DNA from: Octopus bimaculoides
Lineage: Eukaryota
Reading direction: 5' to 3'
Assembly (NCBI RefSeq): GCF_001194135.2
Contig: NC_068981.1
Location: 147,205,182 to 147,269,181 of the forward strand
Length of the DNA stretch: 64,000 bases
Under the pieces are notes generated by a model, which was given only the letters and a program-made list of their open reading frames with translations, had not been told where the DNA came from and made no database searches. Below, piece by piece: positions 44,569 through 45,623 of this stretch. How positions within the stretch are numbered: position 1 is the stretch's first letter; each line of letters begins with the position of its first letter. Made by a program: the position numbers and the translations under genes.

Positions 44569-45623
44569 TTGAATACAGTTAAAGAAAAAAAAATTGTCAA
44601 GAGAGAATACTTTACAATATATGTAAACCTACATATTCCTTTACACGTTTCAGTCATTTGACTGCGGCCATGCTAGAGCACTGCCCTAAAGGGTTTTAGT
44701 TGAAGAAATCAACACTTTCATAAGCCTAGTACTTAATCTGTTGTTCTCTTTTGCTGAACCACTAAGTTATGGGAACATAAACACTGACATCAGTTGTCAA
44801 GTGATGGTAGGGGGGGGGGGCAAACACAGACACACACAAATATATATATATATATATATATCATCATCATCATCATAGTTTAACATCCACTTTCCATGCT
44901 AGCATGGGTTGGACAATTTGACTGAGGACTGGCAAACTAGATGGCTGCACCAGGCTCCAATCTCATCTACGACAAGCTTCTTTCCGTTTCCATCTACAAA
45001 ATCCACTCAAATGCTTTGGTCAGCCTGAGGCTATAGTAGAAGACACTTGCCCAGAACCATGTGGTCGAGAAGCAAGCTTCTTACCATACAACCACACTTG
45101 CGCTATTTAACTTATTTCACCACAATCAATTTCCTACCCTTCATGAGGTCTCATCAAAGATATCAACATCATTTGATGAATCCTAGAGAAACAAGTAGCC
45201 ATTCTGTTTATATATACATCAAATCTAGTAGCCTCAGATAACTGGAGCTGTACTCGACTAGATACAATACCATAAGTAATTAAATAATTTATTTATTAAT
45301 TGCTGGGTTGAGAGGAAGGGACAGTGCCCAACGTCATAGCCTTCCTAGACAGGTGAGAGTAATTCCACCAATGTTCCTCTTAAACCTTTGTAAGTCAACA
45401 CCTGCCAGAAAGAAAAGATCAAAGAGGAAGTACCAAAGTCTCCAGTGCCAAAAAGTATGAATGTCCAGTCAGTCATACCAAATCGCCAGTGTTCGAACAG
45501 CCATGCCCAATCAACTCATTTCACTGCTTTGGTAACTTATAATACAGAGGTTGCTAAATAATACACATCAAGCTATTCAGAAATTACAATTAGCTAAAAG
45601 ATTGATAATTCCTAAAAGGATAT
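44569..45623 (-). other. U12-type (minor spliceosome) intron with AT-AA termini
   Basis: 5' end ATATCCTTTT; branch-site-like TTCTTTAAC about 10 nt from the 3' end; ends TATTCAA. Splicing at these ends restores the conserved GAFC-D-LVWSDP. Confidence 0.88.
45290..45510 (-). mobile_element. Degenerate CR1/Jockey-group LINE 3' end inside the U12 intron
   Basis: Minus-strand translation ...RLWYFLFDLFFLAGVDLQRFKRNI resembles the LINE C-terminal RLWN.LP...DLQ.FK pattern, followed by an (AATT/AATA)-rich tail. Confidence 0.5.

Follow-up and report, generated by a model that had tools for sequence, protein, structure and literature searches.

A probable minor-spliceosome intron with AT-AA termini in the PPP6C gene of Octopus bimaculoides

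U12-type introns with AT-AA termini were previously established as a small natural class. Eight of them were reported by Sheth et al. 2006 (three from human, four from mouse and one from Arabidopsis), with RASGRP4 and FLJ21106 as human/mouse examples and MSH3 displaying AT-AA in human versus AT-AC in mouse (PMC1557818). According to a survey of minor introns, no other non-canonical type is as common as AT-AA in animals and plants; the survey also recorded a relative enrichment of minor introns in molluscs and had Octopus sinensis among the species of its conserved minor-intron comparison (PMC10639083). In human cells, AT-AN introns were the class most dependent on CENATAC/CCDC84 and were spliced less efficiently (PMC8280824). 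The variable last base of this class and the proximity of its 3' site to the branch are covered by secondary descriptions (PMC8280824, PMC2831892). In the literature library searched, no paper paired PPP6C with U12-type introns, for which the lack of the intron in vertebrates (one lizard examined) is a plausible reason.

The intron described here, located in PPP6C of O. bimaculoides, is very probably an AT-AA minor-spliceosome intron of the U12 type, A-type subclass. It is a further example of a known, uncommon class and calls for no new mechanism. With canonical U12 AT-AC introns it shared the 5' site ATATCCTT, a TCCTTAAC-like branch motif about 10 nt from the 3' end and the lack of a pyrimidine tract, and it was directly orthologous to the PPP6C AT-AC introns of oyster, chiton, spider and starfish; it differed from them by its last base, A instead of C, and by a single T for C in the branch motif. 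Likewise, it resembled the known AT-AA introns (RASGRP4, FLJ21106, MSH3) in its termini, its U12 5' site and the single-base switch between AT-AC and AT-AA among orthologues, but it occurred in a different gene and lineage, the lizard PPP6C being devoid of an intron at this position. By its sequence, it belongs to the AT-AN introns that depend on CENATAC in human (PMC8280824). The first dinucleotide AT is also found in U2-type AT-AC (type II) introns, yet their 5' site is U2-like and has G at position +5 (PMC1557818, PMC2831892), whereas the octopus intron displayed ATATCC and a U12 branch motif. AT-AA had been called rare in the sequence-only reading of this DNA, a preliminary annotation that preceded the present analysis; this stands when all introns are considered, but not among non-canonical minor introns (PMC10639083).

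The host gene was identified in the window, i.e. the whole analysed stretch of 64,000 nucleotides, through a tblastn scan with a PP6 sequence, after which exon borders were placed by hand. Over 1401 nt around the intron, the window was 100% identical to chromosome CM046601.1 of the O. bimaculoides assembly GCA_001194135.2, which confirmed its origin from this species. The features on which the argument relies are the following.

39452 to 56105, minus strand: PPP6C, the part within the window, nine coding exons (tblastn and manual model).
45624 to 45741, minus strand: PPP6C exon upstream of the AT-AA intron, 39 residues and the first base of the Asp codon (translation, gene model, transcript contig pieces 45622-45741).
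44569 to 45623, minus strand: PPP6C AT-AA intron in phase 1, length 1055 nt (exactly this length is skipped by the RNA-seq joint).
45614 to 45623, minus strand: U12-type 5' splice site ATATCCTTTT, intron positions +1 to +10 (sequence, orthologues, DNA contigs of three runs with 0 differences).
44578 to 44586, minus strand: putative branch-site motif TTCTTTAAC, one C>T from the consensus TTCCTTAAC (sequence, orthologues).
44569 to 44570, minus strand: 3' terminal dinucleotide AA, read as TT on the plus strand (seven DNA runs with 0 differences, organism B, O. sinensis).
44477 to 44568, minus strand: PPP6C exon downstream of the AT-AA intron, last two bases of the Asp codon and 30 residues (gene model, RNA reads ending at 44568 and 44477).

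The assignment to PPP6C, already made in the sequence-only reading, was upheld by a Pfam Metallophos domain (E = 4e-43), by 83-89% identity to animal PP6 catalytic subunits and by an exact match of the 305-aa protein to RefSeq entries XP_052827323.1 (O. bimaculoides) and XP_029640369.1 (O. sinensis), each of which bears the name serine/threonine-protein phosphatase 6 catalytic subunit. For this 305-aa comparison, the N-terminal exon, located outside the window, was supplied from P0005; exon 1 gave no match within the window and, according to the O. bimaculoides locus record, lies about 10.7 kb past its end. The seven remaining PPP6C introns of the window were ordinary U2-type introns (GTAAGT or GTAAAT donors and pyrimidine-rich YAG acceptors), from which the AT-AA intron stood out. 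One of them, the intron that follows exon 44477-44568, displayed a depth of about 3-5 over 44354-44461 in RNA-seq run X24 alone, against 0 in runs X38 and X39; some pre-mRNA or intron retention in the X24 sample could account for this signal.

On the minus strand, the upstream exon ended with ...CAC AAG GGA GCC TTT TGT G, its last base at 45624, and the downstream exon started with AT CTT GTT TGG TCT GAT CCT from 44568; joining 45624 to 44568 yielded an in-frame C-D-L-V-W. The intron started with ATATCCTTTT (longer start ATATCCTTTTAGG) and ended with TTCTTTAAC-TGTATTCAA, i.e. ...TTTTTTTTTCTTTAACTGTATTCAA (longer end ...GACAATTTTTTTTTCTTTAACTGTATTCAA), at 44569. Its 5' site agreed with the U12 consensus [A/G]TATCCTT at 8/8 positions, directly at the exon edge. 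The 8-nt branch motif TCTTTAAC (44585 to 44578) differed from TCCTTAAC by one C>T, and the presumed branch A at 44579 was located 10 nt from the last base of the intron. Just 9 nt (TGTATTCAA) separated the branch motif from the intron end and held no pyrimidine tract with YAG, the T-run being located upstream of the branch motif instead of between this motif and the 3' site. No AG occurred in the last 40 nt of the intron, and the single AC of this segment was inside the branch motif itself (TTTAAC). If this AC served as the 3' site, the mRNA would gain 9 nt and encode C-V-Y-S-N-L instead of C-D-L. Both the U12-type 5' site with its nearby branch motif and the replacement of Asp by V-Y-S-N had been put forward in the sequence-only reading, and the consensus agreement, the branch spacing and the translation confirmed them.

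The 9-mer RTATCCTTT occurred three times in the window versus 1.87 expected, which by itself is not significant; the significance of the 5' site derives from its exact placement at a conserved in-frame exon edge, combined with orthology, with the junction seen in RNA and with a branch motif whose distance to the 3' end is 10 nt. The two further exact matches to ATATCCTTT, both on the minus strand, were found at 22184-22192 (non-coding and repeat-like) and at 53171-53179 (PPP6C intron 2, on the strand of the gene). No sign of their use was seen, and the motif count was within chance.

The junction was directly observed in RNA. Three raw RNA-seq runs and one transcript contig displayed a sole exon-exon joint, skipping 1055 nt (44566 to 45622, equal to 44568/45624, as two letters fit either side), with 23, 8 and 11 supporting reads in the three runs. 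When these runs were placed on the repeat-free stretch 44440-44623, 45/45 reads reaching the exon edge broke at 44568 (26, 8 and 11 per run, agreement 1.0) and continued past it with CACAAAAGGCTCCCTTGTGTGGAATTTCTT, which is how the last bases of the upstream exon read on the opposite strand. The 3' splice site displayed no further kind of loose end, and depth was 0 over 44573-44623. Since all 45 reads stopped at 44568, neither the AC located 9 nt upstream nor the AG at 44546-44545 was used. Two further O. bimaculoides studies, as well as one on a closely related second species, yielded transcript contigs with the identical joint; altogether, the reads and contigs that use the junction 45624/44568 come from five studies, four on O. 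bimaculoides and one on the sister species. The intron coordinates and exon edges proposed in the preliminary annotation were thereby found to be exact to the base.

Intron retention, which had also been raised there, was low at steady state, since the raw reads covered unique intron bins at no more than about 2% of the exon depth and no unspliced reads crossed the 3' splice site in the three RNA-seq runs. Low-depth intronic contigs were present in two transcript assemblies. Splicing of the AT-AA intron thus looks efficient, in contrast to the less efficient splicing of human AT-AN introns.

Orthologous introns were compared at the PPP6C loci of other animals, at the same codon (TGT G/AT) and in the same phase 1.

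Oyster Crassostrea (two assemblies): 5' ATATCCTTTT, 3' TTCCTTAACATTTATCAC, U12 AT-AC.
Chiton Liolophura: 5' ATATCCTTTA, 3' TCCTTAACTCCCCTGTAC, U12 AT-AC.
Spider Uloborus: 5' ATATCCTTTA, 3' CCCTTAACTTGGAGAAC, U12 AT-AC.
Starfish Acanthaster: 5' ATATCCTTTG, 3' CCCTTAATCATTCTCAC, U12 AT-AC.
Placozoan Trichoplax sp. H2: 5' ATATCCTTTT, 3' TCCTTAACTCTATGCAA, AT-AA (from sequence only).
Abalone Haliotis rubra: 5' GTATCCTTTT, 3' GGCCTTAATTCCCAACACAG, U12-like GT-AG (tentative).
Apple snail Pomacea: 5' GTTAGT, 3' TTTGTAG, U2 GT-AG.
Sponge Corticium: 5' GTGAGC, 3' GTTTAG, U2 GT-AG.
Lizard Hemicordylus: no intron at this codon.

The 5' site ATATCCTTTT was identical or nearly so in the introns of O. sinensis, oyster, chiton, spider, starfish and Trichoplax. 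Branch motifs TCCTTAAC, CCCTTAAC or CCCTTAAT were located near the 3' end of the AT-AC introns of Crassostrea, Liolophura, Uloborus and Acanthaster, and the branch A was 10-11 nt from the 3' end in every AT-AC or AT-AA U12 orthologue with a located motif (Haliotis left out). The U12 character of the octopus intron, as proposed beforehand, was therefore matched in molluscs and outgroups, where oyster, chiton, spider and starfish displayed U12 AT-AC introns. In Trichoplax sp. H2 (GCA_003344405.1), the intron was 136 nt long (about 2190-2345 of the fetched locus) and appears, from its sequence and from protein conservation, to be AT-AA. The lizard Hemicordylus kept its other PPP6C introns.

The Haliotis rubra intron (about 8248-10037 of the fetched locus) displayed GTATCCTTTT...GGCCTTAAT...ACAG, with a 3' end CCTTAAT...ACAG. 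Its upstream exon, GGGGCCTTTGTG, lacks one base relative to the other species, and the annotated protein (KGPLCNLVW) had no simple derivation from the genome. The call of U12 GT-AG is tentative because the exon frame does not close with the annotated protein; this mismatch may be due to homopolymer assembly errors or to a corrected RefSeq model.

As to the exact intron borders, the same mRNA junction would also be obtained in a shifted register, the intron being read as ATCCTT...CAAAT (AT-AT) or as TATCCT...TCAAA. The two letters AT fit either side of the joint (G/AT...AA/AT), a point on which RNA-seq alone cannot decide. In U12 introns, cleavage occurs immediately 5' of the conserved A/G-TATCCTT. 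The shifted registers break this 5' consensus, whereas the AT-AA assignment follows from the invariant /ATATCC; moreover, the AT-AC orthologues share the same register ambiguity, and there the canonical register gives textbook AT-AC introns. A shifted register is thus very unlikely, and the AT-AA borders were retained.

Cephalopods carry out extensive RNA editing and possess a very active ADAR system. The terminal A of the AT-AA intron could accordingly be converted to inosine before splicing, the spliceosome then facing AT-AI, an equivalent of AT-AG, and minor introns of the AT-AG type do exist (PMC1557818). As no unspliced reads covered 44569, an A>G signal could not have shown in these data. 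Yet, AT-AA introns of mammals and plants are spliced without such editing (PMC1557818, PMC10639083), and Trichoplax appears to share the terminal AA. Such editing ahead of splicing is therefore very unlikely, and direct use of AT-AA is the preferred reading.

The terminal AA was also established at the DNA level. Contigs from seven independent DNA runs (several samples from three studies, word depths 12-61, each run assembled separately) displayed 0 differences to the window across 44440-44623, and three of the seven contig sets also covered the 5' splice site, again with 0 differences. The DNA support is that of these per-run contigs, since the raw genomic reads, of which 1-2% of each run was sampled, included no read over the 3' site. 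A related species (organism B) displayed several intronic differences, none of them within the splice signals, and kept AA. In O. sinensis, the intron was 923 nt long, 91-97% identical and exactly of the form ATATCCTTTT...TTCTTTAACTGTATTCAA. In genomic DNA, the first AT and the last AA were thus shared by O. bimaculoides (seven runs) and two other Octopus species. If the intron were of the ordinary AT-AC kind and its last base had been misread in sequencing or assembly, a single base change would suffice to match the orthologous state of oyster, chiton, spider and starfish; this explanation was refuted by the seven-run contigs and by the AA of the sister species and O. sinensis, which left it a negligible probability. 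The absence of AG or AC at the junction, claimed in the sequence-only reading, was therefore retained.

Two public gene models follow a different path, i.e. major-spliceosome splicing from a cryptic GT (45626-45625 or 45587-45586) to the AG at 44546-44545. The 2015 O. bimaculoides model (UniProt A0A0L8IH57) reads ...KGAFYVESW through the exonic GT 45626-45625 and the AG 44546-44545, and a conserved segment of 10 residues is deleted. The O. vulgaris model (CAI9716164.1) reads 12 codons into the intron (...AFCDILLRIINLLANYVESW) up to a GT equivalent to 45587-45586 and uses the same AG. Such splicing is practically excluded and was refuted for the sampled RNA libraries by the junction reads: no read supported it, coverage was unbroken from 44545 to 44568 where 45/45 reads broke, the 1055-nt skip was the sole exon-exon joint, and the models delete or replace the 10-residue segment retained by every orthologue.

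A similar defect was found in the deposited protein of Trichoplax sp. H2, which reads into the orthologous intron (...AFCDILLNNFLCEMYYIWSDP). RefSeq, on the other hand, holds the correct PP6 product for both O. bimaculoides and O. sinensis. The expectation that standard gene predictors would mis-annotate this locus was borne out by A0A0L8IH57 and CAI9716164.1, with the reservation that evidence-based pipelines succeed. The two Octopus models and that of Trichoplax sp. H2 lose or corrupt a conserved 10-residue segment of the PP6 catalytic core, and work on PP6 or phylogenomic work relying on such faulty protein sets inherits the error. Being verified by RNA and able to break gene predictors, this non-canonical minor intron can serve in annotation quality control.

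Regarding mechanism, the splice signals and orthology suggest that the PPP6C intron would depend on the U11, U12, U4atac and U6atac snRNPs; on the same grounds, PP6 expression would require U11/U12 splicing, as proposed in the sequence-only reading. The U11/U12 di-snRNP would cooperatively recognise the 5' site ATATCCTT and the branch site UCUUUAAC, with U11 at the former and U12 at the latter. The C>U difference in the branch site should preserve a G-U pair with U12 snRNA, as deduced from known pairing. The U4atac/U6atac.U5 tri-snRNP would join next and U6atac would replace U11 at the 5' site, with branching predicted at 44579. Cleavage at the 3' site would be set mainly by how far this site lies from the branch adenosine (about 10 nt) rather than by which base comes last, which would explain how a terminal A can work instead of C. 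The invariant spacing in orthologues, their variable last base and the clean site 10 nt after the branch A fit this picture of minor splicing.

The orthologues indicate that the PPP6C intron dates back at least to the placozoan-bilaterian ancestor and that it was U12-type in the bilaterian ancestor. As AT-AC was displayed by other bilaterians, the octopus state would amount to one C-to-A change of the terminal intron base, most simply a substitution fixed before the split between O. bimaculoides and O. sinensis. The change from AC to AA apparently occurred at least twice (octopuses and Trichoplax), the 10-nt spacing between branch and 3' end being retained. A more elaborate proposal is that these changes were not neutral drift, a weaker AT-AA 3' site tuning PP6 dosage through minor-spliceosome or CENATAC-like activity, or being read as AI after A-to-I editing in cephalopods; we consider it improbable.

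The U2 GT-AG introns of Pomacea and Corticium at the same position and phase, together with the U12-like GT-AG intron of Haliotis, fit a proposed path from AT-AC via U12 GT-AG to U2 GT-AG. Subtype switch, conversion to U2 and loss are evolutionary routes of minor introns that were reportedly described by Burge et al. in 1998. The same routes were described by Lin et al. 2010 (PMC2831892). Since this one PPP6C position spans AT-AC, AT-AA, U12 GT-AG, U2 GT-AG and intron loss, it provides a marker for the evolution of minor introns in molluscs.

Apart from its splice signals, the AT-AA intron harboured a repeat.

44624 to 45109, unstranded: very high-copy interspersed repeat inside the AT-AA intron (DNA word depth, RNA loose ends).

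Word depth over this repeat was about 10^5 to 10^7 in DNA contigs versus 15-60 in the flanks. Thousands of RNA reads originating from it ran into other copies, with the loose-end consensus GGTGCCACGCAGTGGGACTGAACCC. This consensus looks tRNA-derived and the repeat may be a SINE; the Rfam scan of the window recorded no tRNA or other family at the gathering threshold. No tandem repeats were found in 44000-46000.

Elsewhere in the window, an uninterrupted ORF of 312 aa (23437-24375, minus strand) matched Pfam NOA36 (ZNF330-like zinc-finger, E = 1e-145); located downstream of PPP6C, it seems to form a gene with one exon. Runs of N, corresponding to assembly gaps, were located at 23209-23375, 24998-25656, 35447-35729, 36258-36344 and 38636-38935, and were mostly flanked by long microsatellites of the (TA)n/(CA)n type (about 20000-21800 and 33400-35900).
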